Shown here piece after piece: positions 1-52,922 of a stretch of 64,000 nt of DNA (within the stretch, counting starts at the first letter, position 1; each line of letters opens with the position of its first letter). The notes beneath the pieces were generated by a model. It saw only the letters and a list, made by a program, of their open reading frames with translations. It ran no database searches and was not told the origin of the DNA. The translations under genes and the position numbers were made by a program. The DNA is from Takakia lepidozioides (Eukaryota > Plantae > Bryophyta), in contig CM060732.1 in the NCBI GenBank assembly GCA_030704615.1, forward strand, positions 80,910,001 through 80,974,000, in the 5' to 3' direction.

Positions 1-2255
1 AACCTTTGAAACTCACTACAGTATCCTTGGCAGAACTTCTAGGTCTAACAGTGAGGGGTTCTGCTGAATGGAGGGACACAGTTGGAAAAACTGTCCTATG
101 ATTCAAAACAGCCCTGATGAACTGGAGTATATTTCAATGGCTTATAATGCTCCCATTAGTTCTTCTGAGATTGTGGGAAGCAATTGAACATTTAAATGGA
201 TATAAGCTGGTGGACCTGATGGTATTGTCAACGAGCTTATCAAGCACGGTGGCGATCCCATGATAGAGGCCCTAGTTCTCCTCTTTAACCTTATCTGGAA
301 GACTGAAATGATCCCCTTTCGCTGGCGACAGGGGGTCATTGTCAATCTATACAAGAAGGGTGACAGAGAAGAACCGGGGAACTACCGTGGCATCACGCTC
401 CTCAATGCTGTTGGCAAGACATTCTGCAGAGTTATAAGTACTCGTCTCGAGGTTGATCTGGAGTCTAGAGGTTGTTTCCACGAAGGCCAAGCTGGCTTTC
501 GGCGAAAACAGGGGCTGTGTGGATCATATCTTCACTCTAAGCCAGATTATCCAGGGAAGGAAAAAAGAAGGGAAACCCACTTATGTCTTTTTCCTGGATG
601 TCAAAAAGGCTTATGACACAGTGTGGAGAGATGGCCTATGGTTCCGCCTCTGGTCTTGTGGGATCAAGGGAAAGATGTGGAGAGTTGTCCACAACTTGTA
701 TGCTCACACCAAAAGCTGTGTCACTGTTAACGGACAGAAGTCCAACTTCTTTGACATAGACCAAGGTGTAGCTCAAGGATGTACTCTCTCCCCTCTGCTC
801 TTCAATGTTTTCATCAATCAACTCCTCGAGGATGTGGAAAGTGAGGGATTTGGGTTAAGGGTGGGTGATACCACCATACCAGCCCTTATGTTTGCGGATG
901 ACTTCGCAGGCATAGGGGAGACTCCAACCAATCTCCAGGAGTTGATTGATTGCGCGAAGAGATACTTTGATCTTTGGGGGCTAGAGGCTAATGTCAGCAA
1001 ATGTGCAGTGGTAGCATTCAACGACAGAGGAGAGGGAGGAAGTGATCTTAAGTGGCAGTGGGGTAGCCAAGAGATCCCGGTCCTCCCTTCCTACACTTAC
1101 CTGGGCGTTGAGTTCTCCTCCAATTGTAATTGGGATGCACATATCCGGAAAGTTGTTCAAACTGGCAAGGGCAAAGCTCTGGGGCTCACTAAATTTTTCC
1201 ACTGCAGAGGGGTCAACTCTGAGGTTAAGAAAACCATGCTTTGTCGCGTTATTAGACCTGCCTTGGAGTACGGATCTGCTATATGGGTTGATAACTCCAA
1301 CCAGGCTAAGTCTCTAGAATCCATTCAAGTGGGGGTGCTTAAGGAGTGTATGTCAGCATGCTCCAAAACAGCCAATGTGGCTGTTCGGGGTGAGTTTGGC
1401 ATTCCGTCCTTAAGCTCCCGACGAGATGAATTCAAGGTCAGATGGTGGGGTCAGCTGCAACATATGCCCAACACCAGATATCCTAAGTTAATCGACTCTA
1501 TATCTTGGAAACAGGACCGCCCTGTCAAACAGGCTAAGTCCTGGCAGAAGAGAGTAGAAGAGATTCTCAAGGACCTGGACCTGGATCCGCAAGTCTTGAC
1601 CCTGCTGGATAAATCTGACTTAGAGGCTGTAGTGTCCTCAGCCATGTCTGTTGCCATGAGATTGTCTGATGAAAATGAAGTTAGGCAGAAAACTTCCCTG
1701 AACTTGTTTCCAGTCTGTGACATGGGGGAGGACATCTTGGATGACCTCAAGGGTCTACCCACTCTCGGCACTAGACTGAAATTTAAACTCAGGGCAGGAA
1801 GCCTACCTTTGAACAGCAAACAGAAGCAGAGAGGAAAGGGAGAGTGCAATTGCCCGTTGTGTGGGCAATCTGAAGACAGTATTCATTTTCTGATACACTG
1901 TCCGGGGTTCTCTCACCAAAGAGACGCTCTCTTCAAATCTATTAAGGGAATTGTGCCTGTACCCCTGTTTACCAACTTTGAAAGTCTCGAGGCTGAGCCA
2001 AAAGCCCAGGCCCTCCTGAGGCCTAGTTTTTGGGCAAATCACACACAGCAGATTGATGCTTGTGTGAAGGGATTTCTAGAGGATATCTGGAAAACCCGGA
2101 TTAATTCTTTATATGGAGGTAAGTCTTACTACCAACGTCAGCCCCTGACAGAGGTAGGTTCTGTCCCTTTTGTTCCCGCTCAAACTGGGCGCGGGGTCAA
2201 TGGCCACAAGGCTACGGCAAACAACGTCTTATGAGTACAATCTCTCTCTCTCTCA
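1..2255 (+). mobile_element. Non-LTR retrotransposon (LINE, RTEX-like) ORF2 3' half: reverse transcriptase plus C-terminal CCHC finger; frameshifted; 5' part outside window or lost
   Basis: GPDGIVNELIK..., NYRGITLL, QAGFR (260..616), frameshifting near 500 into ORF 453..2234 with FFLDVKKAYDTV, GVAQGCTLSPLLF, LMFADD, YLGV, FKLRAGSLPL and CPLC..HFLIHC. The stop codon lies in the tail motif CTTATGAGTACA followed by (CT)n. Clade assigned from motif style only. Confidence 0.9.
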
Positions 2256-14000: not shown

Positions 14001-14339
14001 GGATCACCAGACTACAGCCATAAGTGCACCAAAGAAATCCTTTGGATTACGAATTGGGCAAATCCTCCTCGGGTGAAAGGAGAGCTGTCTGCGCTTATAC
14101 AAGGTCGAACACAATCTGATGAGGGTTCTGTTCACGATGGAGCTTCAGGCCGAGAATACAATAGGTATTGTTGTTGAGGGTTGCAACGCAAGCAATCAGG
14201 ATTGGTACAGTTTGTTCACAAATTATGTAACTGCATAACTGTGTAAACCCATTATATAGTGAGGAGCCTGTCCTTGTGAACATATTTTGCTTCAGGTGGT
14301 TTGAGATGTATTATGTGAGTTTGAGTGCAAAGGTTTGTG

Positions 14340-16844
14340 ATGTTGGTACCTGAGAATTTGAAGTACTGCAGGATTCCATGTTTGAATGAGGCACAGCTGT
14401 GCGAATCAAGGATACCTACCATCACCACTGCTTTTGAAAGAGGGTCAACAGAGGGACTCAACAATAACTCCTCTGGCACTCATGGGGTTTTAAAGACTCT
14501 GTGTAAGGCAGGACGATTGAAAGAGGCAGTGCACATTTTGAACCAACAAGGCATCTGGGCCAATTTAAATACTTATGTCTGTCTCTTGCAGGAATGCATC
14601 AACATGAAAGGCCTAGCAGAGGGAAGGCAGGTCCATGCCCACATTATCCAAAGTGGATTCAAACCAAATGTCTTTCTACTCAACACCCTTGTCAACATGT
14701 ATGCAAAGTGTGGGAGTGTGGTGGATGCCCGCCAGGTATTTGACAAAATGCCTGAACGAGACATGATTACCTGGAATGCAATGATAGCTGGATATGCCAA
14801 GCATGGTTGTGGGACAGAGGCTTTCAAGATCTATGAGCAGATGCAAGAGGAGGGGGTGACACCTAACAGAGTCACATTAATTTGCATTCTCAATGCCTGT
14901 GGCAGCCTAGGAGCCCTTCCAAAGGGCAAAGAAGTCCATGCCGACATCATCAAAGCGAAGGTTCCCTCAGATATCGTTCTTGAGACTTCCCTTGCTGACA
15001 TGTATGCCAAATGCGGGAGCATGAGAGATGCACTTCAAGTGTTCAATAATATGGCCAAACGAAATTTGGTCTCCTGGAGTGTGATGATTGCAGGATATGC
15101 TCAGCAAGGGCAAGGTAGGGAGGCTCTTGAGATGTATGAGGAAATGATTCAGGAAGGGGTGACGCCCGACAAGGTCACATTCATTTGCATTCTCAATGCA
15201 TGTGCTAGTCTAGGTGTCCTGGAGAAGGGAAAAGAGGTGCATGCTGACATTGCCAAAGCTGGAGCTGCATCAGATATCATTCTGGAGACTGCCCTAGCTG
15301 ACATGTATGCCAAATGTGGGAGCATAAAGGATGCACGGAAAATATTTGACAATATGGCTGACCGAAATGTGGTCTCATGGAATGTAATTATCGTAGGATA
15401 TGCCCAGCATGGGTTTTGCAGGGAGGCTTTTCAGATGTATGAGCAAATGGTGCAGCAAGGGGTGACGCCCAACAACGCCACGTTTATTTGTGTTCTCAAG
15501 GCATGCGCCTGCCTAGGGATCCTGGAGAAGGTCAAAGATGTCCATGCTGACATCAAGAAAAGTGGAAGTGCAAGAGATATTATTCTGTACAATAGCCTTG
15601 TTGCTACGTATGCCAAATGTGGGAGCATAAAGGATGCTCGTCAAGTGTTTGATGGTATGGCTCAACGAGATGTGATCTCTTGGAGTACGATGATTGCAGG
15701 ATATTCTCAGCAGGGGTGTGGTGGGGAGGCTTTTGAGATCTATGAGCAAATGATAAGGGAGGGGGTGACCCCCAACCACATCACATTCATCTGTGTTCTC
15801 GGTGTGTGTGCCAGCCTTGCAGCCCTGGATAAGGGCACAGAAATCCATGCTGCCATCATAAAAGCAGGAATTGTGCCCGATATCATACTGGAGACTGCCC
15901 TGGTCGACATGTATGCCAAATGTGGGAGCATGAAGGATGCTCGTCAATTGTTGGACAATATGGCTGGAAAAGATGTGGTCTCATATAGTGCAATCATTGC
16001 AGGATATGCTCAACATGGGTGTGGTAGGGAGGCTTTTGAGATCTATGAGCAAATGATACAGGAAGGGGTGACTCCCAACAAGGTCACATACATTTCCATT
16101 CTCAAAGCATGTGCCAGCCTGGCAGCCCTGGAAAAGGGCATAGAGGTCCATGCTGACATCATCAAAGCTGGAGTTGCGCCAGATATTATTCTGGAAACTG
16201 CCCTTGTTGACATGTATGCCAAATGTGGGAGAATGAAGGATGCACAGAAATTGTTTGACTCTATGAGTAACCGAGATGTGGTTGCATGGAATGCAATGAT
16301 CACAGGATATGCTCAGCATGGGTGTGGTAGAGAGGCCCTCCAACTATTTGGACAAATGGAACAGGAAGAAGTGAAGCCAGACAATGTCACTTTTCTATGT
16401 CTTCTGTCTGCATGTAGCCATGTCGGCCTAGTGCAAGAAGGCAGTCACTACTTTGGTTCCATGAGTCAAGATTATGGGCTCACTCCTACTGTGGAGCATT
16501 TTGGCTGCTTGGTGGACCTTCTGGGCCGTGGAGGGCAACTGGCTGAAGCAGAGGACTTAATTAACAAAATGCCAATCGAGCCAGATGCTTCAGTGTGGGG
16601 GGCTTTGCTTGGTGCCTGCAGAATCCATGACGATGTGGAGAGAGCAGAACATGCGGCAAAATGTCTTCTGAAGTCAGATCCACAACATACTGCAAGTTAT
16701 GTGCTGCTATCAAACATCTATGCTGCAGCTGGCAGGTGGGATGATCAAGCAAAGGTGCGACAAATGATGAAGGACAGGTGTGTCAGAGAGGAGCCAGGGC
16801 ACACCTATGTTGAGGTGGACACCCAGGTGCGTACATTTGTGTAG
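14340..16844 (+). CDS. PLS-class pentatricopeptide-repeat protein (E-type C-terminus, no intact DYW); organellar RNA-editing-factor family
   Basis: Single long ORF with six YAKCG units exactly 303 nt apart (14697 to 16212), then LLSACSH.GLV, CLVDLLGR, VWGALLGAC, YVLLSNIYAAAGRW and a PG box. The true start may use upstream exons. Confidence 0.95.
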   Translation: MLVPENLKYCRIPCLNEAQLCESRIPTITTAFERGSTEGLNNNSSGTHGVLKTLCKAGRLKEAVHILNQQGIWANLNTYVCLLQECINMKGLAEGRQVHAHIIQSGFKPNVFLLNTLVNMYAKCGSVVDARQVFDKMPERDMITWNAMIAGYAKHGCGTEAFKIYEQMQEEGVTPNRVTLICILNACGSLGALPKGKEVHADIIKAKVPSDIVLETSLADMYAKCGSMRDALQVFNNMAKRNLVSWSVMIAGYAQQGQGREALEMYEEMIQEGVTPDKVTFICILNACASLGVLEKGKEVHADIAKAGAASDIILETALADMYAKCGSIKDARKIFDNMADRNVVSWNVIIVGYAQHGFCREAFQMYEQMVQQGVTPNNATFICVLKACACLGILEKVKDVHADIKKSGSARDIILYNSLVATYAKCGSIKDARQVFDGMAQRDVISWSTMIAGYSQQGCGGEAFEIYEQMIREGVTPNHITFICVLGVCASLAALDKGTEIHAAIIKAGIVPDIILETALVDMYAKCGSMKDARQLLDNMAGKDVVSYSAIIAGYAQHGCGREAFEIYEQMIQEGVTPNKVTYISILKACASLAALEKGIEVHADIIKAGVAPDIILETALVDMYAKCGRMKDAQKLFDSMSNRDVVAWNAMITGYAQHGCGREALQLFGQMEQEEVKPDNVTFLCLLSACSHVGLVQEGSHYFGSMSQDYGLTPTVEHFGCLVDLLGRGGQLAEAEDLINKMPIEPDASVWGALLGACRIHDDVERAEHAAKCLLKSDPQHTASYVLLSNIYAAAGRWDDQAKVRQMMKDRCVREEPGHTYVEVDTQVRTFV

Positions 16845-22200: not shown

Positions 22201-25200
22201 GTGAAGGAGAAGGCACCCTCAGACCCATACATATGACAATCCATGAAGGTCCGAATGACATGACTACGAATGATCCCGTTGGAAGGCCAATTAAGGCGTT
22301 CATCAAAACTCCACAAGTATGCAGCAGTTCAATTAGGTGAGTATAGTCTTCACAAAGTACCTTTTGGATGACTCGACAGCCATACATTTGAAGACTGAGG
22401 GCAAGCACATGCCCCACCAATTGACTTGCCAAATCTCGTCTCTGCTGCTGAGTCCCATGCTCAAAGAACTGTATCAAGAAAATTGCAAGTGCATAAGTTC
22501 CTCCCTGCAACCAACCTGTCATGTTGTGCATATAGTCGTAGAATGGGCAATGCAGTCTTCTGTTGCACATTCTGATGGAGGTACTTTGCTACTGTTGAAT
22601 CACATTGGTTTGACTCAAGAGCGTATCAAAAGGCTCCTGTATTTAATAACCAAGAGTTGGAGACCTTTCTCCAGCCTTCTGTGGCCTCAAGAGCCTTTCA
22701 TCTTTTAAAGGTAAGCTACTAGCGGTTCGACTCATATGCCACGCAGGTTACATGACACAGAAGGAGCACAAAATCAATGTCTTTCCAACATGGATTTTAG
22801 GTTGAACGGAGAACTGGGGCACTATCCTCCCCTTTGGCTTCTTTGCAATCCAGCTCAACCACACAACCAACCTCAGAACAACTTTCTAAAGGGTCTTTAT
22901 CAAAATGTGTTTAGTTCTTCAGTCCTCGGTCACATGTTTATAAGAATACCATTGTGCTACGCACTTTTTTGACTGAAGTAGAAGAGAGGATATATAATCA
23001 TTTCAAGACTCATTCAAGAATGTTCATTGAATAGTTGATATGAAAAAGAATCGCAGACCTTCAGAATCTGCCAAGGAGTGTCAGCTCTTGCAAGAATTGA
23101 AGCCCTAGACATTGATATCATCTACTAGCTGGTCATACAGGTGAAGCAAAACCTTTTGAATCACATAGTTGCCAAAAACATCAGTCATGAGGGTCAAAGC
23201 CCGGGGGAGAACTTCCTGAAACACCATGGCCTTCTCTTCTGAGCTAGCAGTCTCCAATTTTTGTTGAATGAAACGACTCCCATGCTGATCAGCACTGTAC
23301 AACCAAGGACACGAAGTTCAACTTCACAACAGAAATTGTGAGTACAAAATCTTACACCCACATGACATCGGCAATCAAGTTTTTCCTTTGAATCAAGAAT
23401 GACACTTTTCTTCATGGTGGGGTTGAATAATGTGCAGAAGATGTTTAAACAGGTATCCTGACGACTTCCCAAGTAATCTGTTGGTAAAATAGCATTGTTT
23501 CAATACTGAGAAGACATACCTGAACTCAACAACATGCCCAGCAATGTCTGAAAGCTCAAATCGCCGGGTCTTACTAGTCTTGAACTCTTCAAGCAGGGAG
23601 GATCCACGAACTTCATCAGTCGTTTCACTGCTTCTCTGTGATTGCCAACCAGAATAGCTCCCTCCTGCAGCAGCAGCAGTAGAGCTTGACCTACCTGACC
23701 CCGAAGACAGACGTATGCTTCGGTCTTCACGTCTCAGGGACAGACTTCCAGGTCCTACGGGAGACCCAGGAAGTACAGGGCTGGCAAGAGGTGAATTTGG
23801 GTAGGGCATGACCAAGCCAACTCCAGGGGGACTACCATAGTAGGCTGGACTCACAGACCCACTTTTGTTGCTGGCAATGGGCACCCCAACAGAACCACTT
23901 CGCACATACTGTGACTTTTGCTCTGCTGTGTACCCTAACATTGCTCCTAACTGCTGCTTTTGGAGTTCCAGCATGTCCACATGTGCTCCTCCCATATAGT
24001 TCCTCAAGATGGACGGATCAGTCAGTGCTGCTGCGGCATGGGCATCCTCTGCAGCACGCTGCATGTACTGCATATACAGTGGATCAGGAATAGGGGGCGG
24101 GAGCCCAGAGCCTGCTTGTCCTGCATATTTGTACAAGTGCTGCATATCCACAGCAGATTGAGCAGGAGAGCCTGGAACTCCTGCCCTCACCCCCATACTG
24201 GCTGCCACTGCCGCTGCTGCCCCATCGAATGCTACAGGTGGAGGGTAGCCAGCCATCATTGGTGCCAGCATGGCTGGACTCATGGGATATCCACCTATCC
24301 CATACTGTGGCGCATAAACAGCTGCAGAGTGAAGATTTGGGTAGTACGAGTTCCCTGCCATATATGACATTGCAGCAGCTGCAGCAGCTGCATACATATT
24401 AGGCCCTGCTGCGCCTGCCTGGAGCCCAGGTTGAAGAGCAGCTGCCTGCCCTTGCTGAGCTGGAACACTGTACTTAACCTGACCCCTGTAGCCAGTGTCA
24501 AGCCCTGAATAAAGTTGCTGCTGTTGCTGCTGCTGTAAAGCCTGACTATAAGCCAACGCCTGCAATTGAGCCACCTGACAGGATAGTTGGAACCTAACAG
24601 AAAACGTGTTCGAGAACGAGCGCACTCACAAGGGCAGCACTGAACAACAACAGCTACACCCCAGTCCGACCCAGCTATGGACTGGCATCGGGCCCTGAAT
24701 TCATACAACCGCATAAGCCACTTTGCCACATCCAGTATAACATACACAAGATACATGTGGAGTCACAAGCGACTGAATCCAAAGCCTTTCCAAAGCTTCT
24801 CACACCGGTAAAGTTACAGGCAGACAGGCTGGGAATGGCACCATTCCAGATAAAAGCAGGCATAAGTCAGGACAGGATGGACTGACAAATCATCCGAGAC
24901 TCTTAACAGTAAAAATAAAATAGAAGACCTGGCAACCTGCGCTTGTGCCTGAGCCGCCATCTGGGCACGCTGCTGGCGCTGTTGTTGCTGCAGGCGCAAA
25001 TTGTGCTGCTCCTGCTGCAGATGCTGCTGCTGGAGGAGCTCTCTCTCCTCCATAGCCGCTGTTGCACTCTGTACATCTGCAAGACTTAATCCCTGGAGTG
25101 CGGCTGCAAGCTCTGCAGCACCTGCACTTGCTGCTGCACTGAGGGCCACACTCCTCACCTCAGCACTTGTGATGCCACCCCCTCCAGAGAGTCCTGAAAT

Positions 25201-31903: not shown

Positions 31904-32751
31904 CACTACAACAGATCGCGGTAGTTATGACTGCCAAACCATGGTAGTCATGGTTTTCTTGACTTTGACCGTGACTGCACCATGTTTTTATATGAAATTG
32001 ACCTCCCGCAGTCGTTTATACGACTGTAGTCATATGAATGACTATCTAAGTAGTCGTCTGTATGACTACATGGCTCCGGAATGGGCGGAAGGCTGGTCAA
32101 CGGCAATTGACCAGATTTAGCTCACCATTCATAGTCATTTCCATGACTACAGTGTACATGGATGAGATTACATAGTCATGATGACTACTGGGGATTTTGT
32201 AATTTGGTGTGTATAATACAATTAAAACACCATATGATCACATGAATGACTAATGGGTGTATTGATTAGCAGGTAGTGAACTATAACTCTTATAGTAAAG
32301 GTTGCAGGTTCAAACTCCTCTAAGTACAATCAAATGGATAAGATGGCCCTAGGGTTAGTAGGCGAACTAGGGATAACACGTGGTAGCCTAGATGGGCTGC
32401 CACGTGGCTTTTTCATTATTATAAAATACATTATGCCACGTGGCACAATGTGGTGCGACGCGGCGTCCGACATATGTTTTTAATTTTTTTAGTTTTGTAA
32501 ATTAAATTAAATTTTTAATCAATTGCGCCTCGCCACGTGGCGCGGCAGCGGCGACTGCAGTATGATGGTATATATGACTGCAGTGAGAGATATCACTTGG
32601 TTCATCTGACTGTAGTCATCCGGACTGTACCATCTTGTACTCATTGTATTACCTTGGTTTGCACGACTTACAGTTATAGAAGTCATATGTATCGTTTATG
32701 ACTGCAGAATAGTCATATATACAGTCAGAAATACCGCGATCTGTTGTAGTG
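31904..32751. mobile_element. Non-autonomous CACTA (En/Spm) element, 848 bp, both ends intact
   Basis: TIR CACTACAACAGATCGCGGTA at 31904 with its perfect reverse complement ending at 32751; 3-bp TSD TCT on both sides; dense subterminal TGACTG(C/T)A and TAGTCA repeats. Confidence 0.95.
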
Positions 32752-39808: not shown

Positions 39809-40660
39809 TGTAGTGGCCCGCAAGCGGGCCATCATGGCATTCTCTCAATTAGAGACTATCTCTGATCCATCCCTTCGGCACGTAGAGTCGCTTTTGCTTG
39901 TACCAGAGCAGTCCATTGTGCAAGTGGAACTACAAGTTAACCCCCATCCTCAAGTCCCGCATCCCGGACTTCGTTATCTCATCCTTATAGTAAGCCTTCC
40001 AGATCTTCCTTTGGAGCGCCGTCTCGCCCCTGTACACCAACATGAGCTGTTGCTTCTACTTAAAGCATTGGCCACCACACTGTCACGTCCTGGTTTGTAC
40101 TGGATATCCACGTCGAACACTGCCAAAGTGTTTTGCCACCTAAGTTGTTTTGGGGACAACTTAGGCTGCGTGGCAAAATACTTCACCGTGACATTGTCCG
40201 TGAACACCTTCACCGGGTTGGGACCAACATTGTGGCGCCAAAACTCAAGACAATGCACCACCGCCTTCATTTCTTTCTCGTGCGTAGGCCACCGTCGCTC
40301 CACTTCATTCAATTTCTTACTTACGTAAGTCACTGGACATCCATCCTTCATGAGCACATCCCCAATTGCGAAGTCCGACGCATCTGTATGAATCTCAAAT
40401 GGACGGTCGAACTCCGGGATTTTCAGGACTGGGGCTTCCGCCATCCGTTGCTTCAACTCGACAAAAGCTTGGCCACAAAAGGTGTTCCACACGTATACCT
40501 TGGACTTACACAGAAGGTCTGACAGTGGCCCCGTGATCTTGGCGAAATTTCTCACATACTTTCGGTAATAGGAGGCGAGTCCTAGGAAAGATCGCACTCC
40601 CGGGACCGAAGTCGGAGGCTCCCAGTCCATGATCGCCCTCACCTTTCTGTCATCCATCTC
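39809..40660 (-). mobile_element. Ty3/gypsy internal fragment: RT C-terminus, RNase H and start of integrase
   Basis: KVRAIMDW, RSFLGLASYYRKY, FEIHTDASDFAIG, HEKEMKAVVHCL, YKPG..VVANALSR, then LYVP...ECHDGPLAGH; both ends broken. Confidence 0.92.
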
Positions 40661-41146
40661 ATCCTGATGTGGCGGCAAATGATGACGTGGCACTGTCCGC
40701 CATTTGCCACGTCAGCATTAACATGCGCCGCCTATAACCGAGGATGGTCCTATGACCGTGGAATTAATGCAGGGAATCTTGCCTAAATAGAATCAAGACT
40801 ACCATGAGGCCTACAATTGTAGCATCCAACATTGTGCAATTACAAATGCTTGTTTCACTTTTACAATTACGAGGACGAGAAAATATCCTCACAAAGTGTG
40901 CGCCTTAGAGGCTGCCACGGGAAGACCTTCCTCCCTCCTCAAATAACAATGAGAGTTAGGATCATCTTCAAAAGATGATTGTAGTGCATAGCGACAACAA
41001 GACATGTAAACTTCGAACGGTGCAATGACAAATGTGCTTTTGAAAGTTGCCACTCAGAGCTCACTCACTATAGTTGGAGGCCATATCATTGCACCGCCGA
41101 CGAATTGATGTGAATTACACATTTCAAATCATGGTCGTCCACATGC

Positions 41147-41470
41147 CTACCCATGTGTTGTATCCCGTTGCAATAGAGTATCGACCTCGTTGAAACTTAT
41201 AGTGGCCTGGTGAATGAAGTTGTCACGTTTGGGATCGCAAACCATCCTCTTCAAAAATATGAAATACAAAGGTTTGCAGGGTATGAATTTACCTCTCTTG
41301 CCCAAACTGGTTGATAGCATATTCACAAACCCAGGACATGTGCAATTGGGGAAATTGGAAACCGTGATGTCGTAGGTCCTGTCATGAACAGCAGATGTGG
41401 AAGTGATGATTGTGAATACCCGACCATATCTTGGATCGGGTACCACACAACTACCGGCAGACGAATCCAC
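41147..41470 (-). pseudogene. SWIM zinc-finger C-terminal fragment of a MULE-like transposase
   Basis: YDITVSNFPNCTCPGF...GKFIPCKPLYFIF: CxC...CxH pattern with His replaced by Pro. Confidence 0.75.
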
Positions 41471-42959
41471 GGGGACCACGTGGAGAGTGTGTGGGTCAAC
41501 GCGTGGCGTCGTCCCCATGCAATGGCAGTGAGGGGTACGACTGCTAGTGGAAAGACGCAGAGTGCTTGTGCCCTCTCGGGACTGCTTTGGCCAACTCCGC
41601 TGCCACTGTGCTAGTTGGTTGCACTGCAGTAGGAAAGCACTGCAAACGAGCACTTGTAGTGGTTTGTGTGAGTTGTCCAAATGACCTGCATTCTAAGTTG
41701 AAAGTATGTTTCTGATGTATTCTGGTGGTTTTAGTGGTTCACCCATATGCAGGGGGAATTGAGAAGCAATGATACTGGGCGAGACTCAAAACACAGACCA
41801 CGATGCATGCACAACATCACGCTAATGAACCAAATAGATGTAGTCCAGGGAGACCAAAGACCATCACACATACACATAGAAGGTGGACGGACACGACGAC
41901 AAGTCAGGAAAATATGATATTACATTCAAATAAGAGACCGTCACGGCACACCTGCGTATGAGCAACACAAAATGCCAACATACATGGTTGCCGGACATCA
42001 CATAAACTGTCATGGCCCAAATGTTCAAAACTGGTAACGTGAGTATCATACACACTTCTATGAGTATCATTACACACCCAACAGGGACTACAAACATGAA
42101 ATCTCACTTGATACTTTCACCTTTCCTCATACTCTTCTCTTGCCACAGAGTCACCGTGCCTTTTACGTGCGCTAGTGTGGTCTCGGGGGGGGGCATCGTC
42201 CACATTTGGGCAAGGCAATGTAACACTTGGAAGCATGATCTCGTGGACTTTCACCTTGTACCACCCGGAACGAATGTCCTTGCAGTGGAACTTGTCAACC
42301 CCGGCTATTCCCACCACTTCCGCCTTTGCGGTGGCTGTCTTTGACCGCTTGTCATTGGGGTTCTGGAGAAACACAGGATCTGGTATCTGCAGACACCAAC
42401 ATGGTCCACTCAGCAACATAGAGTGAAAGTCCAGCGCAGCTGGGCATGGAAACGATATTGGTTGCCACGATACTGAATCAGCAGCAAATTCACGGTGTAC
42501 CAACGTACCTTGAAGCGAGGCTCGTCGCTGAGGGTGGCAACTGAGGAAAGCTGCCCACGTGTCTTCAACTGCAGCAGCAAAAAGAGGTTTAGTCAGACGG
42601 ATAAGAATAACATGAACTTTGGTGGCTGCAATGGTATAAACACACCTCCACGGAGCAAGCTAACAAACACCCTGCTCAGACGCTGCACACTACAACTTCC
42701 TGGCAAAAATAACCCTACTAGTAACCAGGCAAAGCAAGGAGCCATGAATGCATGCCTGGGGAACCACGTCCTGCTGCGATGATGGTGCCGGGGACAGCCC
42801 ACTCCTCTTGCTCACCTGCAATGAATACACATTGCAACGCTTCAGGAAGTGTATCCATAAAGGAAACCAACCTAGTAAGTTTGCGGAGAGGGGCTGGGAA
42901 CAACCATACCTTGGGCGCTGCCTCCTCATGCCGGGGGGCAGATCCGGAATGCTGGCGCC

Positions 42960-43410
42960 GTAGCACTATGGTCCTTGGCGCAGGAGTTCCCCCTCCCCTT
43001 GTGTGGTGAATCATCCACTAAGAGGGTGTTGGATTTGTTAAATCCAGAAAATTCCGACCACACCCTCGACAGTCTCTTCTGTAAGTTCTGTACGGCAGGC
43101 CCTTTTGTGGGGTGTGCCTCTGTCAAGGGGTCACACTCCTCTTGTGACCACACAAAGAGGGGAGAACCCTTGACCCCCTGCATCACCACTTTCAAGATGT
43201 CTTCAACATTCCCCTTGGAAGCACAAGACCATATCCCAACATAGAAATAACGGAAGAGAAGGTTTAAAAACTCGCAGACCTGGGGCCTTGGGAAAACATA
43301 CTTGTTGGTGGTCAACACCCATGGCCAATGACGCCTCGGGTTGGGCTGAAAGTTAGGAATAGAGTGGCACAGGATCCCGTTCAGGTCTAGAACAATTAGT
43401 TTCGACTTTT
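42960..43410 (-). other. FCP1/NIF-family HAD phosphatase-like domain inside the TnpA-like gene
   Basis: KLIVLDLNGILCH...VFPRPQVCEFL...FYVGIWS...LFVWSQEEC...KRLSRVW...NTLLVDDSPHK. Confidence 0.88.
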
Positions 43411-45399
43411 CAATGAAAGGAGCTTCTGAAGGGGTGTCACGGGGTCTCACCTCAGTGGGTTGGGAGACAACAGTCACCCTGGAGGGCAAAGTTTCGGTCC
43501 CCCTGCAGCCTGGACCGGGCAAACTACCACCCTCTCCCCCTACAGCTTCCCCTTTCCCCCCATCATCAGCAATGACCCCCCCATCGTCCATGTCATCCCC
43601 ACCAACTTGCTGGACCTCTCCCTCTTCAACGAGTGGACCCTGCCCCCCACTATGAATATCATCAACAACAGGCTGGACCTCGGTCACATCCCTACCCACT
43701 ACAATTACTTCCTCTTTGTCAGGTACAATGGTCGCAGCAGGGGGGTCTTCTATAATGCCACCCTTCACACCCCCTTTTTGCCCCATCATAAGTTCCACTA
43801 TCTTCTTCAGTTGTGCTTCCATTCCCCTCTCCCGCTCCGCAGAGAGAGCCGCAAGCCTCTCCAGGGCCCCGATGCGGGTTGCCATTGAGTTCCCCGCTCC
43901 CTACGCATACAAACACCCACCCGTATTGTTAAAAACCAGAAGAAGAGGCAGAATGTGCAGGATTTCAGGCATTCGGAGATGGCTGGGTTTGGCATAACAC
44001 CCCTCGTGTACCATGCATGGGGGCCCCACATACCCACCAAATCTTAGTACAACAACAGATTCATGAATGTAAACCGGACTTCAAAACATACCTGGCTCAA
44101 AACAGACTTTGATGGGGTGCCAGTCGCAGCGTTCTTTTGCTCCGCCCCGAGCTCGGACAGTGACGGGCTCCGCGCTTTGCGTCTTTCTGTATTTGCCCAT
44201 CCACACACTGTCAGTACAAAATGCCAGGAGCATATGGACAAAGCACTACCCTGCATATCACATAACAACTAATTCTGCACAAGGAATAAAACCCACTCGT
44301 GGGTGTCTCTTCCATCACAACATGCCACAACATAAGAGCAATGAGAAGGGGGTGTGGGAGATTACCAAACGGGCTGCTTGGCCTGCAACTCCTGCCCGGC
44401 CCCAACGCGAGGGGTTCGTGACACAAGCACGCGCTTGCTTCATCCCTTCGGCTTTTGCAAGTCCACGAGGGGACTCCCAGTAGGCAACAAGCTTATCCCA
44501 ATAGGCAGGTTCAGTGTTCATTGGCCTCACACCAGTCTTCGCCCATTTATCTTTCAGTTTTGCTCTTTCTCCTTTCATTATCTTCCCACATTGCTTGACT
44601 ATAAAATCACGATTGGCAGGGATAGGTGTGTACTCGTACATTCCATTTATGCCCTCTATTACTGTTGACATGGCATTCTGGGACTGCTGGTCAATGTCTT
44701 GTACACTTGAGTCAAGGTAACGCAATGCCAGGCCACGCAAATCACGCTGCCAGTGTTCCTTACATTGATGACTCCATTTCCATGCACCTCCACCTTGTGG
44801 CGCTTTAGCCCTGCAGCCACCCTTCCCTCTCCATCTCCTTCCCATTGTTTCATGGCATGGCGTCGTTTCTTCCTCAGCTCTGATGACCGTTTCCTACCCC
44901 CATGCTCTAGAGCAGCGCTGTCATACGTTCTGGGGGGTGACTGATGTGTGCCGGAGGGGGGAGGGCCGTATGGTGATGTGGGAGGCCCCCATTGTGACGT
45001 GCCAGCATCAGGAAGCCAGCGCCACGACCCTGAAGCAGGGGGGGCTCCCCATGGTGCACTCTGTTGTGGAGACCATCCGGCAGGGGGTGGGTGCCAAGGT
45101 TGGTGTTGGTTGGCATTGTATGGTGGCTGTGAGTGCTTTGCTGCAGCTTCACTCCCCTTCCGCTGCCAAAAACATCCCACACACAAGGTGCATCAGCTGT
45201 AGTCATATTGAACACAATGTCACCAGAGCACAAACCATCCCACAACCACAACCATAAACAGCAGACCTCAAACCCACTCCCCTGCAGCGCAAGTGCCAAA
45301 AAATGAAAAGGAGAGGGACAAAATGTCCTCATAACATGTAAGGCCATTCATTGGTGAAGAAGCAAAATGTGGGCGGGTTCACATCAGTACCACATGAAA

Positions 45400-46640
45400 C
45401 TTACCAGGAAACAGAACATCCATCCGGGTTTTCCACATATCCAGTGGACATCTATTCACACAATCATGTGTTGGCTGTATGTGCTTGCCCAGTCATGGAT
45501 GTTTTATGCCTAACTTCTTTGTCATTACACAATTTTGTGGCAGCACACATGGCTTTGGACACTACAGTCTCTAAGTCACATGGTTCCAGCAAGGTCAAGA
45601 CTTGACGGTCGACATTCAGATCCTTGAGAGTCTCATCTAGTCTCTTCTGGCAGGACTTGGCCTGTTTGGCTGGGCGGTCCTATTTCCAAGATATAGAGTC
45701 GATTAACTTACGATATCTGGTGTAAAGACATGAGTTGCAATAGACTCCACCATCTCACCAGCTATTCCCACCACTTCCGGTTAAGGAAGGGATGCCAAAC
45801 TCACCATGAACAGCCACATTGGCTATTTTGGAGCATGCGGACATCCACTCCTTAAGCACCCCCACTTGGAAGGATACTGCAGACCTAGCCTCGTTGGAGT
45901 TATCAACGCATGTAGCAAATGCGTACTCCAACGCAGGTGCAATGATGTGACAAAGCAACATTTCCTTGACCTTAAAATTAGTCCTTCTGCACACAGTGGT
46001 AGACCATTCGGTTTTTCCACGATGTCCTCCCCCATGTCACAAATTGAAAACATGTTCATGGATGTTTTCTGCCTAACTTCATTTTCATTACACATTTTCT
46101 CTGGTAGCACTCACTTCCGTGGACACTACAGTCTCTAAGTCGCATTTATCTAGCAGGATGAAGATGTGCGGGTCCACATTCAGATCTTTGAGAGTCAATT
46201 GTACTGTCTTCTGCCAAGACTTGGCCTGTTTGGCTCGATGGTTCTGTTTCCAAGATATAGAGTCGATTAACCTACGATCTCTGGTGTGAAGACATGTGTT
46301 GCAACAGACTCCACCATCTCACCTTCAATTAATCTCCGCAAGAGCTTAAGGAATGGATGCCACACCCACCCCGAACAGCCACATTGGCTGTTTTGGAGCA
46401 TGCGGACATCCACTCCTTAAGCACCCCCACTTGGAAGGATTCTGCAGACCTAGCCTCGTTGGAGTTATCAACCCATATAGCAAATGCGTACTCCAAGGCA
46501 AGTGACGCGACAAAGCAAGGTTTTCTTGACCTCAAAGTTAATCCCTCTGTACGAGAACAATTTAGTGAGACTCGGCGCTTTGCCCTTCCTGTTTGAAAAA
46601 CTTTATGGATATGTGCATCCCAGTTTCAGTTTGAGGAGAA
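45400..46640 (-). mobile_element. Two tandem, diverged internal fragments of the RTEX-like LINE in intron 1 of the TnpA-like gene
   Basis: 46630-45995 matches about 1125-1760; 45990-45500 matches about 1200-1700 and then jumps to about 2030-2125 (ALEY..WVDNSN, QVGVLKE, KTANVAVRG). Confidence 0.88.
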
Positions 46641-48847
46641 CTCAATGCCCAGAAAACATGAACACAAGTAGGGGTAGAACTCACCTCATGCGCAGCGGGT
46701 TTGTGCCGTTTGCGCACCTTTTGGAGAGACTCTGCAGATGGAGGTGCAGTTTCCGCCGAACTGTCCTCCACGTCATCGTCGTCGCCCATGCTATACTCGC
46801 TTGTGTCAGAATCTGAACTCAAAGACCGCCCACCGTGCCGCCTTCCCTCTCGCACCGAGGCCATCTTTTGCGGATTCAGTCGAGCCAGGCGGGGGCTCCT
46901 TCGTACCGCGGGGCTGGAATGTGCAGAAGTGGGAGGAGGTGATGTTGCCTTGGCGGTCGAGTGTTTCTTACTAGGCGTGGACATAGACCTTGACAAAGAT
47001 GAAGACAAGTGAGGACATAGACCATGACCAAGACAAAGACGAGCGAGGAAGACCAAGACATGCAAAGGAGGAAAGAAGGACAAGGAGGGGAGTGTGATCA
47101 CACACCCCCCCGATCTGTAGTGAAGATCCGGCCGTTGTTGATTTCAAATAGGAACACGTGTCGTGCATCCGACACTATGGCCTTTTCGACTTTGAGACGT
47201 TTCAAAATAACCACTTACAATCCTCCAGACAACTAGATGTAGTGATTCACACAACTGACATGGATCCGTTAACTTTATTTCGTTCAAAATTAGGCGAAGG
47301 AAACACACTGCAATGATGCCGTGTATGGCTCCGCTTTACATGCATTCTTGGAGAAAATGCGCATGATGTGTGAGAAGTGAACACAGTGCTCTGCCAAATG
47401 ATTCAGCAAAAACAAACTCAACTGTAGTGGTTCTCCCATCGCAGAGAAGGGTCCATTCGACACCCATCGCACCATGCCAGGTTGAGGTCCTCACACACAC
47501 ACCTGCACACCAAGAATTTGCGAACCCACATCAGCTGGGAGAACATGGAAATTACCCCGTGGATCACATGCAAGCATGAATGAGAAATGGAAGGAGAATT
47601 GCATGGGAGATTTTGGTGTACCTGCGCGACATGCAACTCTGTCTACATACTCCATAAGTCACTGTCCCAAGACCCAAGTGGACAGGGGAGACCGGTGAGT
47701 CTGTACCACAAATGGTAATCATACAGCAGAGGGTACTGCTGCCCAACGTGCAAAAACCGCCGGCTGCAGGATGCTAGGCATGCGAACTCCAGCACAGCAC
47801 GCCTCCTCTGCACCCCACTCCGTCCCAACCAGTGCAAAACAACCGTGCATGCATTGACTGCCGTCTGGGTTTCTCTCTAGGCATTTGGGGTCTGCGATCT
47901 GCTACACGTAAGTGTCTTTGAAGGCGACGATCAAAGGATCCGGTCACTTGCAGTTGCCGTCTCAAGGGCAGCATTGCAAGAATCACAATTAAGTAAGAAA
48001 GATGGTGGAAGAAGCTGTAAACTGCCAATGAGTGAAGTGGCAGGGCGATGCTCCATTCTTAACATGCTCCCCTTCCCGCCATGGTGATAGAGCCACACAA
48101 ATGGACTCCCTTCCCACCACGGTGCAATTTCAAGGCAACGGAACGGGATTGACCGCCGAAACTTGATTTGGAGATCGTGGCCGAATCCGTGATGGAATTC
48201 AACCTTCCAATACATGATTCCTCAATCCGTCTCGCTCTTCTGCTGAGGGTGGCATTGGGCAAACTACCCCTTGCTACAAACTTTTGATCGTAATGTGCTT
48301 TTGAGAGACGAATCGATGCAATTGGATATTGTGCAGACGATGACCGCCGATGAGTGGAGTTCACTCATTATGGCCTAAGACAAGTGGCGCAAGTTCTGGC
48401 CTTGTAGTCGGGTTGTTCACACTTCAATGCACACATTTCATACACATTCAACCATATGCCCAAGATCACAACGTCCTGAATCGTGAAAATTGAAATTCCA
48501 CGTACGTCCTCCGATTCCTCACACACACACGAACTGTAGAGACAGGTGGTTTTCCAGGATGTCGTTGTTTTAGTCGATTTTGGTCATTTCTCTCAGTGTC
48601 TTGTTGAAAAGATTCTAGTTATGATGGGAAGCATCTTGATGGCTTTTAAATGGTTTGTTGTTAAGTGTAACTTTCCATCATGTTATGGAATCTACCAGTT
48701 GGTATAAAATGTCAACTGTCTTCTCTGCCAAAGAATGTGCGGCTGAAAATGGGAGTGGCAGAGCCAAATTGAGGAGTCTTTGCAAAGGAGAATCCGGCCC
48801 CCTGCAACGACGTGCACAAACTACATTGAAGAGGCTCCCCAACAAAA

Positions 48848-51800
48848 ATGAGTTCCCCTCGCCCATGCGGAGGACTTCCAATTAATCACCCCTGTAGACA
48901 GAACACCCGAGATGACAGGTTGTGGGAAAGAGAAGTGGCACGTGCCCGAGCTCTTGGGCTTTCAAGGATGCCATGCCAATGTGAACGTTGTTTGGGCACT
49001 ACAAGTAGATCTGAGGACAGTGTGCGCACACATCTCCTTCACCACAAAAGACATGAAGCATTTCGGGTGTGGATTGGAGATGGACCTGCAGACGAAGACG
49101 ATGAGGAGTGGGCACAATTGGACAATGCACGCCCCCGGGGGAGCCATACAGACAGGCCAGACAAGGACTATGTCATGGGCGCAGGACATGAACCAGGCAT
49201 GGACGAAGGGGTGGAGATTACTCGAATGTTGCAGGAAGCATTCCACATCATGGACGATGCTGAAGAGGGGGACGGCGCTGCGACAACTGGGGATGGTGAT
49301 GACGCAGGAAATGAAGACATTCACGTGGGGGAAGGCGTGGAAGGAGGTGGAGATGGAGATGAGAATTCAGCACACATGATAGTAGAAGAAGCATGTGTGC
49401 CATTGTACAAAGGATGCAAATCCACAAAGCTTGCTGCCACCATGCTGTTGATGAACCTGTGCACAACCCACGGTGTCTCAGACCATTTTGTGTACGAGTT
49501 GTTCTCTTTGCTTCGGCTGAACTTGCTTCCACAACCAAATGAAATGCCAAAAAGCTGTCACATGGCCAACAAAATGATTGGGAAGCTCGGCCTCAACTAC
49601 GTGAAAATACATGCATGTCCAAAAGGACATGTACTTTTCAGAAGAGAGTACAAGGACGCTATGGAGTGCCCAAAATGCGGTGCAGCTCGATACCATGATG
49701 TGGGCAGGTTACAATAGCCAGCCAAGGTGTTGAGGCACTTTCCCCTTATCCCCCGTCTATTACAAATGTACAAATGTAAGACCATTAGTGAGCTCATGAC
49801 TTGGCATTCCAGGAATGCCTCAAACGATGGTTTGGTAAGGCATGTCCCAGATTCCCTTGCATGGAAGCATATAGATGCAACTTGGCCCGATTTTGCCGAG
49901 GACCCACGCAATGTGCGATTGGCTGTATCTACAGATGGAGTAAACCCATACGGATCAAAGAGCTGCACATGGTCCACATGGCAGTTGGTGGCATACAACC
50001 TGCCACCATGGTTGACAACAAAGAAATTCTTTGTCATGTTGTCTCTCTTGATTCCAGGCAAGGAGTCCGTGACAAATGCAAACATAGATGTGTATTTGCA
50101 ACCATTGATTGAAGAGCTACAGGAACTATGGATTGGAGTTGAAGCTTACGACATTTTGAAACCAGTAGGGCAACGGAGTTTCACCCTCCGTGCCATACTC
50201 ATGTGGTCGATCCACGATTTCCCCGCATATGGCCTTGTTGCGGGTTGCAAGACGAAGGGCTACAAAGGGTGCCCCATTTGTGGGCCCTATGTGGATTCAC
50301 GGCACTCAAAGCCATTGGGGAAGACAATATACATGGGGCATCGATGTTACCTTGCAAGAAACCACCCCTACCAACGAGCAGGAAGGCACTTCAATGGATG
50401 TGTTGAAAAGAGAATGGCACCAAATGCTGTGACACCGCAGGAGACATTGCAATTTGCAAAGGAGAAAGAGGCGTTCATGGAGATTGGAGGGAGAGAAGGA
50501 AGTAGTGCGGATCCAGCCATGGAGCACGGGGTGAAGCGCCGGACAATCCTTTGGGATTTGCCATACTGGAAGGTGCATGAATCCCCCCCCCCCCACCCCC
50601 CATTCACTCACTTTCTTTCACATTGTGCTTCCTGGAATTACCTTTACTGTCAAGAGTCCTTCCACCAACTCCTAAGTCAGTGTAACTATTATGCAGTAGA
50701 TGTTGAAGTCGTACACCTCACTGTGGAGAGGATCGTGTAGTTGTTGAAAGCAGAATGTAGTAACATGGACAACTTCTGCCACATATTCTACTATTTTTGC
50801 CCATAGAACTTGGTCTCATGGGAGGACATCTGGCATTTCAGAACCTCTTGCAGTGGTACCTCCTGGACCCCATGCATTGTGAGAAGAACTTCTGCGAGAA
50901 CATTCTGAAGACGATCTTTGGGGAGAAAGATACGATATACGTACGAAATGACATGGAGATTGAAGGGATACGGTCACATCTGTGGCTAAGGCCTGATCCA
51001 AATAGACCTTGCAAAGTGCTCATGCCAGCAGCATCATACGTCCTGACCAAATCAGAGCAAGAGCATTTGTTGAAGACATTGGGAGCCATGAAAGTGCCAA
51101 CCGGATTCTCGGGTGCTCTCCAAAAGCATGCCATAAACAAGAAATGGTCGGGGATGAAGTCACATGATCTACACGTGATGATGCAGCATATTTTGCCAGT
51201 GTGCATTCGGGGTACAATGGCGCCGGGTCCTCGAACAGCCATAATGCGTGTAAGTCAAGTGTTTAGGAACATTTGTGCGAAGGTGTGGGATCCAAGGGAC
51301 ATTACATCGTTGCATGAGGATGTGGTTGTGACCCTATGTTTGCTGGAGAAAGAATTCCCTCCATCATTCTTTGACGTCATGACGCACTTGCTAGCGCATC
51401 TTGTAGAGGAGCTGCATGTGTGTGGGCCCATAGCCAGCCGTTGGATGTACCCCATGGAGAGGTATATGAAGGATCTGAAGGGGTATGTACACAACATGGC
51501 ACGGCCAGAGAGGAGTATGGCGGAGGGCTACATCCGCGATGAAGCCCTGGGCTTCATGACAGAGTATATGTCTTCATTTGATGCAACACAACGACGGGTG
51601 TGGGACGAGAACAAGGAAGAAGGAGTTGTAGGCGAGGTCCTAGAAGGTGGTGGAACAAAGCGTGCCATGAGCCCGCGCCTTCGGGATGTGGCACATGATT
51701 ATGTGCTGAACAACACAACAACCATGACACCATGGAGACAGTGGGTGTAAACTTACATCCCTCCTGTGCTATTCTTAATGGTCTTTGTATGCTGGAATTA

Positions 51801-52922
51801 CATATATATTGTCACAAGTCATTCCGGCCACTATGGGAGTGGGATCGTGTACTAACAGGGTGCTTCAGACGACTACAAAGGGTGTTTCGTAGTTGGTGTT
51901 GTTGCTTGCAAGTGATTATGAAGTAGGCTGCATCACTACAGTGTGCTTGAAAGGACACAATCTGCATGTGGCATGCATGTACAGTACGGTGTTGGTCAGG
52001 GGGACTGAGTTGCAGCTTCTATTTGGTTTCTGCCAGAAAGTACGCAGCGGAGAAGGTCCGCCTGAAAACGGAACGGAGTGCATTTGCAAAAGCATGGCGG
52101 AGGGGCGGTCGTAGGCGCAGATCCCCGGTGGAGTACCCCACAACAATGGAGGAGTTGCAGCCTTTTACAATGTGGGTCAGATTTGCAATTGCAGTGTACG
52201 CATCAGAGAACGAGGACCCAGATGAGGGCATGGTGAGTCTGTCATTCCCCCCAGGGCTGATTGCCACTTCGTACCGGTCAATGAAAGCATATGGCAATCA
52301 TTATAGAGTGGACAATGCCAACACCAGCCTCCTGGTGACTTATGACAGCGGAGTGGCATCATTTTTTGAACAAGAGAGTAGGAGCTGTGCACGAGATCGG
52401 AATCCAATTTCATGCCCTGTGCAATATGTAGGAGTCATCAAAGAGATCCTTAAACTAGACTATGGTCTTGTGAAGCCGATTCTATTCCGTTGTTCTTGGG
52501 TAAAAGCCAATATGGTAGGAGAGAATGCCACCATGAAACGGGATGAGTACGGGTTCCTCCTCGCTGATTTCAGAAAAATGCTACCACAAGATGAAGAGCC
52601 ATTCATCTTCCCATCGCAAGTTGAGCAAGTTTTCTTTTCAGATGACACCCATGCGCCGGGATGGAAGGTGGTTCTTCACAAGGACCCCCGGGCCAAACGA
52701 GTCGTGGCTGACGTCCATGATCTGGACCTAGGGGAGAATGCCGACCACGAGGATCTGAGGGAACCACAAAATCTACCAGATACGGCCGAACCAATCTCTT
52801 TGGAAGGAGCAGTTACCTTTAATGAGGAAGACATTCGAGGGTTGGTAATTACCGCAAGGCAAATTGCAGATGTGGGCAGTGAAGGGGAAGATTCTTTGGA
52901 TACGGATAGTGAGCCCAGCTGA
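48848..52922 (+). pseudogene. CACTA/En-Spm transposase (TnpD-like), near full length, with one in-frame stop at 49715
   Basis: MPCQC..C..HL (transposase-associated domain), IHACP..C..C, LRHFPLIPRL, DPRNVRLAVSTDGVNPY, YNLPPW, DVYLQPLIEEL, IHDFPAYG, LDPMHCEKN, MKSHD.HV, FPPSFFDVMTHL, RWMYPMERY, FRCSWV, EPFIFPSQVEQVFF. Introns near 50573-50841 and 51741-52036. Confidence 0.95.

Follow-up and report, generated by a model that had tools for sequence, protein, structure and literature searches.

We analysed a stretch of 64,000 nt from Takakia lepidozioides (assembly GCA_030704615.1, contig CM060732.1), hereafter the window, in whose coordinates all positions are given. Its minus strand carries a split gene with an NIF/FCP1-homology domain in its middle, and 1.9 kb beyond the start of this gene, on the opposite strand and divergent from it, lies a CACTA transposase of the TnpD type (Table 1). 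The NIF-bearing stretch is probably a dead copy of the accessory gene (open reading frame 2, ORF2, in the position of TnpA) of a high-copy CACTA transposon family in which the NIF domain is a standing part. For comparison, contigs from four sequencing runs (X1, X5, X11 and X12) were aligned to window positions 42000-47100; X1 is a DNA run, and X11 and X12 are probable RNA runs, a label guessed by the tool. A word-seeded search with exon 2 matched one protein only, P0169, and through it recovered a further copy, L001, a 1591-nt Logan contig from a plant-metagenome run. L001 is 97% identical to the window, covers exons 2 and 3 and stops short of the NIF part; the comparison with a second copy is limited to this one sequence.

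The exons of the gene model are joined in phase 0. The two junctions proposed in an earlier note on this DNA, from 46685 to 45162 and from 44092 to 43900, are canonical GT-AG pairs when read from the sequence. The acceptor near 44197, which that note had taken to be degenerate, turns out to be a normal AG at 44188-44187; exon 3 begins at 44186, and one A has been lost here. Candidate exon 1 encodes low-complexity sequence rich in S, P and basic residues and then in acidic ones. Contigs of the DNA run X1 align to it at about 90% identity, and phase and splice signals suggest that it is joined to exon 2. Exon 2 is broken into two overlapping ORFs in the window copy and is open through all 270 codons, from acceptor to donor, in L001. 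Exon 3 of L001 is likewise open and in phase 0. In exon 4, no stop codon interrupts the reading from the helical segment via the acidic linker into the NIF domain. With 383 nt restored that the window copy has lost at the end of the domain, the frame past NIF would remain open to a GT at 42909, again in phase 0. In the candidate tail, one X11 contig lies on 42142-42278, aligned with one gap.

Table 1. Coordinates of the NIF-bearing gene model and of the neighbouring transposase in the window
Feature	Position	Strand	Remarks
Exon 1 (candidate)	46685..46984	-	ATG at 46984; exactly 100 codons; donor GT 46684-46683
Intron 1	45163..46684	-	contains an insertion of roughly 1.2 kb, 45399-46652
Exon 2	44366..45162	-	P/W/G-rich stretch; Ptta/En-Spm-like segment at its end; acceptor AG before 45162, GT after 44366
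Exon 3	44092..44186	-	acceptor AG 44188-44187, donor GT 44091-44090; 32 codons in other copies
Exon 4	42910..43900	-	AG before 43900, in frame with the NIF ORF; end at 42910 a candidate only
Exon 4, helical segment	about 43766-43900	-	short; precedes the linker
Exon 4, G/D/E-rich acidic linker	about 43421-43765	-	between the helical segment and NIF
Exon 4, NIF/FCP1-homology domain	42986-43420	-	DLNG motif at about 43378-43389
Candidate tail exon	42509-42568	-	20 codons; good AG and GT
Candidate last exon	42386 to stop at 42104-42117	-	model inferred from ORFs and splice signals
CACTA TnpD-type transposase	48848..52922	+	Transpos_assoc E 5e-4, Transposase_21 E 6e-70, DUF4218 E 1e-34, DUF4216 E 3e-11

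Pfam searches were run on the separate exons and ORFs. The NIF family (PF03031) matches residues 162-297 of the ORF at 42926-43885 on the minus strand with 47.4 bits (gathering cut-off 21.8) and an E value of 2.1e-12. The HAD fold, described earlier as near-complete, is not so in the window copy: the match is incomplete, covering positions 1-121 of the 160 in the profile, and homology ends at 42986. The alignments of ten host proteins by tblastn all stop at this position because the window copy is short of about 383 nt at 42983-42985, which correspond to the last quarter of the NIF domain. At this breakpoint, record 22 of X5 aligns in two pieces that share 3 window bases and are separated by 380 unaligned letters. 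The consensus of the loose ends of X1 contigs at 42983 carries the NIF frame onwards, with residues that fit the next motif of the host family. The domain thus appears to be complete in other copies, with about 383 nt more that continue in the NIF frame.

The deletion is accompanied by other lesions. In exon 2 of the window copy, a 13-nt deletion at 44762/44763 shifts the frame; these bases are present in L001, X5, X11 and X12. In exon 3 a single A is missing at 44183/44184. This base is present in L001, in X5 and in seven X1 contigs, and is retained by most of the X1 contigs that cover the site. A fourth frameshift, a one-base slip in the C-run at 42185-42193, probably disrupts the tail. With the 13-nt and 1-nt frameshifts, the deletion of about 383 nt and the probable frameshift in the tail, the window copy is a pseudogene, unable to encode the protein.

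Repeat status was judged from counts of distinct contigs, and contig depth was not taken as copy number. The X1 run yielded 5043 contigs on 42000-47100, with identities to the window ranging from below 90% to above 99%. At variant sites, the NIF part has 13-19 distinct X1 contigs and the remaining exons have 4-26. This is a highly repeated family, whose NIF part has as many distinct contigs on it as the other exons have. No candidate emerged when a 100-residue piece of NIF was used in a word-seeded protein search for short products of other copies, and none of the 409 pattern matches of the NIF exon to JGI metagenome contigs was confirmed.

In X11 and X12, the probable RNA runs, contigs lie on exons and the intron stretches are empty. 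Two of them end at 45161, beside the acceptor of exon 2. A 618-nt X12 contig is aligned as far as the exon 2 donor at 44366 and has 168 further letters. At the depth of this contig (8.89), 28 nt are covered in the bin where exon 2 ends and 46 nt in the bin of exon 3; a further 22 nt stop at 43902, where the acceptor of exon 4 lies, and introns 2 and 3 have no cover at this depth. The X12 pattern fits an RNA in which exons 2, 3 and 4 are spliced together; a processed DNA copy would look alike. The NIF part is represented in the probable RNA runs by contigs at 43285-43456 (88% identity), and the tail by one contig.

The proteins nearest to the NIF domain of the element belong to the FCP1-homology proteins of plants, carry the motif VLDLNG and are 30-39% identical to it. 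A HMMER search of 1.84 billion protein representatives gave 1454 matches, none exceeding about 47% identity; the seven top-scoring ones rank high because each holds two NIF domains. Plant proteins of this DLNG type, such as EUTSA_v10012375mg of Eutrema and those named 'FCP1 homology domain-containing protein C1271.03c', share the motifs VLDLNG, RP, VGIWS, W-Q-C, K-L and DDSP-K with the element. They contain single or tandem NIF domains, some together with DUF724, CCCH zinc-finger or GeBP domains, whereas the NIF domain of the Takakia element sits in a transposon accessory protein. Among the 44 long nearest NIF relatives, no transposase-related family was found, the partners being DUF724, CCCH zinc fingers and GeBP. 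The NIF stretch of the element has no intron; in an orchid host homologue, the corresponding stretch is interrupted by at least three.

The single-domain NIF protein closest by percentage, P0036, reaches 47% over its best stretch. It was found at 2801-3391 of L004 and 125-715 of L005, compact and gene-dense contigs (JGI metagenome, Logan run) on which it stands beside GT_PLOD and kinase genes. These contigs are probably not of plant origin and come instead from a large virus or a microbial eukaryote. No transposon genes were found near P0036 or P0038 on their contigs.

We compared the NIF domain of the element with 169 related host domains, to which its mean identity is 34%. It keeps 21 of the 22 positions that are conserved in at least 90% of them, and 10 of the 12 conserved in 70-90%. 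The sole loss in the first class is the second Ser of GIWSS, replaced by Cys. The Ser of GIWS (motif II), K115 (motif III) and D136-D137 (motif IV) are all kept. Motif I reads D-L-N-G-I and does not conform to DxDx(T/V): the nucleophile Asp is retained, the Asp two residues further on (Asp+2) is Asn, and the Thr is Ile. Asn at the acid/base site is also the state of 95% of the host domains and, being common to the whole host DLNG family, is neither an invention of the transposon nor a sign of decay. In HAD chemistry the loss of Asp+2 cripples turnover, and TIM50 is an example of an FCP1-like domain that acts as a binding module. Since the acid/base Asp of active FCP1/SCP enzymes is replaced by Asn, the NIF domain is more likely to be a binder or a slow or weak enzyme than a normal phosphatase. 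The best solved relatives by family sequence profile are UBLCP1 (3shq; E = 5.5e-11) and SCP1/CTDSP1 (1ta0, 1t9z; E = 1e-7). Their nucleophile Asp and overall order of motifs align with those of the element, but they have DxDxT where the element and its host family have DxNxI/L; catalysis by the element domain is therefore doubtful, and the substrates of UBLCP1 and SCP1 cannot be transferred to it.

Outside the NIF domain, the affinities of the accessory protein are faint. The only Pfam family to match exon 2 is Transposase_24 (PF03004, Ptta/En/Spm), with E values of 0.0086-0.046 and 14-17 bits against a gathering cut-off of 28.7. The match covers positions 2-49 of the 138 in the profile, and the E value of 0.0086 is reached on the final 55 residues of exon 2 (44366-44530). 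Separate searches with exon 3 and with the beginning of exon 4 gave no family match, and the rest of the Transposase_24 profile was detected in neither exon 3 nor exon 4. Streptophyte proteins resemble P0169 in the protein atlas, including nine clusters with PF03004 (score 0.93), which we regard as a lead. Thus, of the flanking segments claimed in the earlier note, the Ptta/En-Spm region stands as the sole family match on exon 2, at a level below the Pfam cut-off. The C-terminal domain likened to Tnp1/En-Spm was a likeness by eye alone: Pfam searches at E up to 10, including that for Transposase_23 (PF03017, Tnp1), on 42117-42503, 42186-42386 and 42104-42226 returned nothing, nor did these tail pieces match the protein atlas. 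The pieces are short because the probable frameshift splits the tail.

The start of exon 2 (44900-45130, minus strand) is a P/W/G-rich stretch with GW/WG motifs (AGW, PWG, QWG), which are also present in L001. Transcribed copies differ within this stretch by a 45-nt in-frame insertion or deletion at 44917-44961. The resemblance of the stretch to Argonaute-hook regions is only a lead.

The neighbouring transposase is spread over four ORFs that occupy three frames; the first two share a frame and are separated by a stop. The breaks between the ORFs may be introns or lesions. Ty3/gypsy fragments flank the NIF gene and the transposase, with RNase H at 39974-40693 on one side and reverse transcriptase from 53984 onward on the other, and the element in the window is probably truncated. 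No subterminal repeats were found for the NIF-bearing copy. Elsewhere in the window, an 848-bp non-autonomous CACTA-type element lies at 31904-32751; its 20-bp terminal inverted repeats are perfect and start with CACTACAACAG, and it is bordered by the 3-bp target duplication TCT at either end. These termini were not found again near the NIF-bearing element.

The insertion in intron 1 consists of two tandem units of about 564 bp each, derived from a reverse-transcriptase element without long terminal repeats (non-LTR). The units match window positions 1101-1759, the 3' part of the RVT_1 ORF at 453-2234, with 80-82% identity and in the opposite orientation. In the DNA run, the depth of this repeat exceeds that of the transposon exons several-fold, and in the probable RNA runs the repeat dominates. 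The insertion may be private to the window copy, since L001 diverges upstream of about 45440. Just downstream of the NIF gene, on the minus strand at 41147-41680, lies a 177-residue ORF with a SWIM-like C-x-C ... C motif and no Pfam match. The window is not pure repeat, as it also contains host genes: an intron-free gene for an 839-residue PLS-type PPR protein with an E motif and an exon encoding a Pumilio-type NABP domain (14325-16844 and 23393-24625, respectively).

The acquisition of further domains by CACTA accessory genes is a known phenomenon, with ULP1 proteases as the most familiar case. The ORF2 of CACTA elements, described as open to such intrusion, gains domains such as Transposase_24 and Peptidase_C48 (PMC8978399). 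In the Jozin elements of Chenopodium (PMC8978399), as at our locus, an accessory ORF with an enzyme-like domain of host type inside it accompanies a transposase composed of Transpos_assoc, Transposase_21, DUF4218 and DUF4216. The two differ in what was gained: Transposase_24 with or without Peptidase_C48/ULP1 in Jozin ORF2, and NIF/FCP1-homology in the Takakia gene, which is divergent from the transposase. Maize En/Spm TnpA, associated with Transposase_24, occupies the same second-gene position; the first third of the Transposase_24 profile finds a match, below the cut-off, at the end of exon 2. For the Takakia copy, neither subterminal repeats, to which such a protein might bind, nor terminal inverted repeats were found. 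Pack-CACTA elements are described as non-autonomous carriers of gene fragments (PMC6379663, abstract), and likewise combine CACTA with host-derived sequence. Unlike the fragments so described, the Takakia NIF appears to be whole in other copies, is intron-free, lies in frame in the accessory protein and has a transposase gene beside it. Our searches of a literature library found nothing that links NIF or FCP1 to CACTA or TnpA, and those of public proteins found no such fusion. The author of the earlier note likewise knew of no described TnpA-FCP1 fusion, and the fusion of NIF to a protein in the TnpA position appears to be undescribed. The type of event is known, given the documented gain of domains by CACTA ORF2 (PMC8978399), and it is the gained domain that is new.

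The earlier conclusion that NIF is built into the accessory gene, and is no loose captured scrap, is upheld by several observations: the domain is in frame within a single phase-0 exon, lacks introns, retains 21 of 22 strongly conserved residues, recurs in many contigs and belongs to a gene whose RNA-run contigs follow the exons. The chief competing explanation, which we consider rather unlikely, is passive capture: a fragment of a host DLNG-type NIF gene, perhaps by way of a cDNA, would by chance have landed in frame in the accessory gene of a single CACTA element and hitch-hiked to thousands of copies without being of use to the element. CACTA elements do take up fragments of host genes as well as additional domains and multiply them (PMC8978399; PMC6379663, abstract). 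The acid/base Asp is missing from the NIF motif, and a signal of selection was not seen: the ratio of nonsynonymous to synonymous substitution rates (dN/dS) is 0.41 between exons 2 and 3 of the window copy and those of L001, a value based on 22 differences, which are too few and all outside the NIF part, and five of the 13 listed coding variants among run contigs are synonymous, again too few to judge. Passive capture accounts less readily for a whole domain fused in frame within one phase-0 exon, for its presence in copies of below 90% to above 99% identity, for the retention of 21 of the 22 conserved residues, and for NIF contigs in the probable RNA runs. Nor does the Asn in the motif speak for decay, as it is the state proper to the host family.

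It is very improbable that there is no fusion at all and that a Ptta-like transposon gene merely adjoins a separate NIF gene or pseudogene, the spliced model being an artefact. Exon 1 has no contigs from the RNA runs, and the link between exons 2, 3 and 4 is derived from the ends of aligned pieces and from bin depths in X12, as this explanation would allow. However, the X12 contig extends well past the exon 2 donor, cover of the same depth recurs in exon 3 and up to the exon 4 acceptor with empty introns between them, and every exon is in phase 0 once the copy-specific deletions are undone. We give just as little credence to a domesticated single-copy host gene descended from a TnpA-NIF fusion. 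The probable RNA contigs would suit such a gene by suggesting expression, but thousands of contigs at graded identity in the DNA run, several frame-breaking lesions and the adjacent CACTA transposase do not.

Several points tell against the interpretation of the locus as part of a CACTA family with NIF as a standing domain. Repeat searches and a dedicated pairing script, which looked for terminal inverted repeats of the CACTA type bordered by a 3-bp target duplication, found no pair within 36-60 kb or across the window. As the NIF gene and the transposase are divergent, they are possibly two abutting fragments and not one element. The identity as an En/Spm TnpA is weak, given the sub-threshold match in exon 2, and the tail of the accessory protein matches nothing in Pfam or the atlas. 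Exon 1 has zero cover in X11 and X12; the RNA label of these runs is a guess, and contigs of this kind would also arise from a processed DNA retrocopy. The single extra copy ends before NIF and gives no measure of selection on NIF codons, and the conservation of NIF residues could reflect recent capture from a host gene of the same organism and not constraint within the transposon.

If the locus is, as is probable, a decayed member of such a CACTA family, its intact members would splice phase-0 exons into one long protein, with an expected length of roughly 900-1000 residues. From its N-terminus this protein would comprise the low-complexity region, the P/W/G-rich stretch, the weakly Ptta/En-Spm-like segment, the helical segment, the acidic linker, NIF and the tail. 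The NIF part would be a complete FCP1-homology domain of host origin and of the plant DLNG type. Judging by its motifs, NIF would most likely bind proteins in a phospho-dependent manner or work as a slow phosphatase, and would connect the accessory protein to a host phospho-protein during transcription or transposition of the element. The earlier note had suggested a phospho-protein reader or eraser tethered to element DNA, which might act against silencing. A more specific proposal, which we put forward as a long shot, is that the accessory protein is a counter-silencing or transcription device made by the transposon, in which a DNA-bound TnpA-like protein holds on to a phospho-protein of the host, for instance the RNA polymerase tail or a chromatin factor, by means of a catalytically muted NIF domain; the GW/WG stretch might in addition hook Argonaute.

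The contribution of the window copy itself is small: it confirms the architecture and shows how copies decay. The broader interest lies in the family. A CACTA family with a complete, spliced and probably expressed FCP1-homology domain, present in thousands of copies, would provide a second, independent test case for host domains gained by these transposons. It would also give a natural entry point to a branch of the FCP1/SCP family that is uncharacterised, the DLNG proteins of plants.

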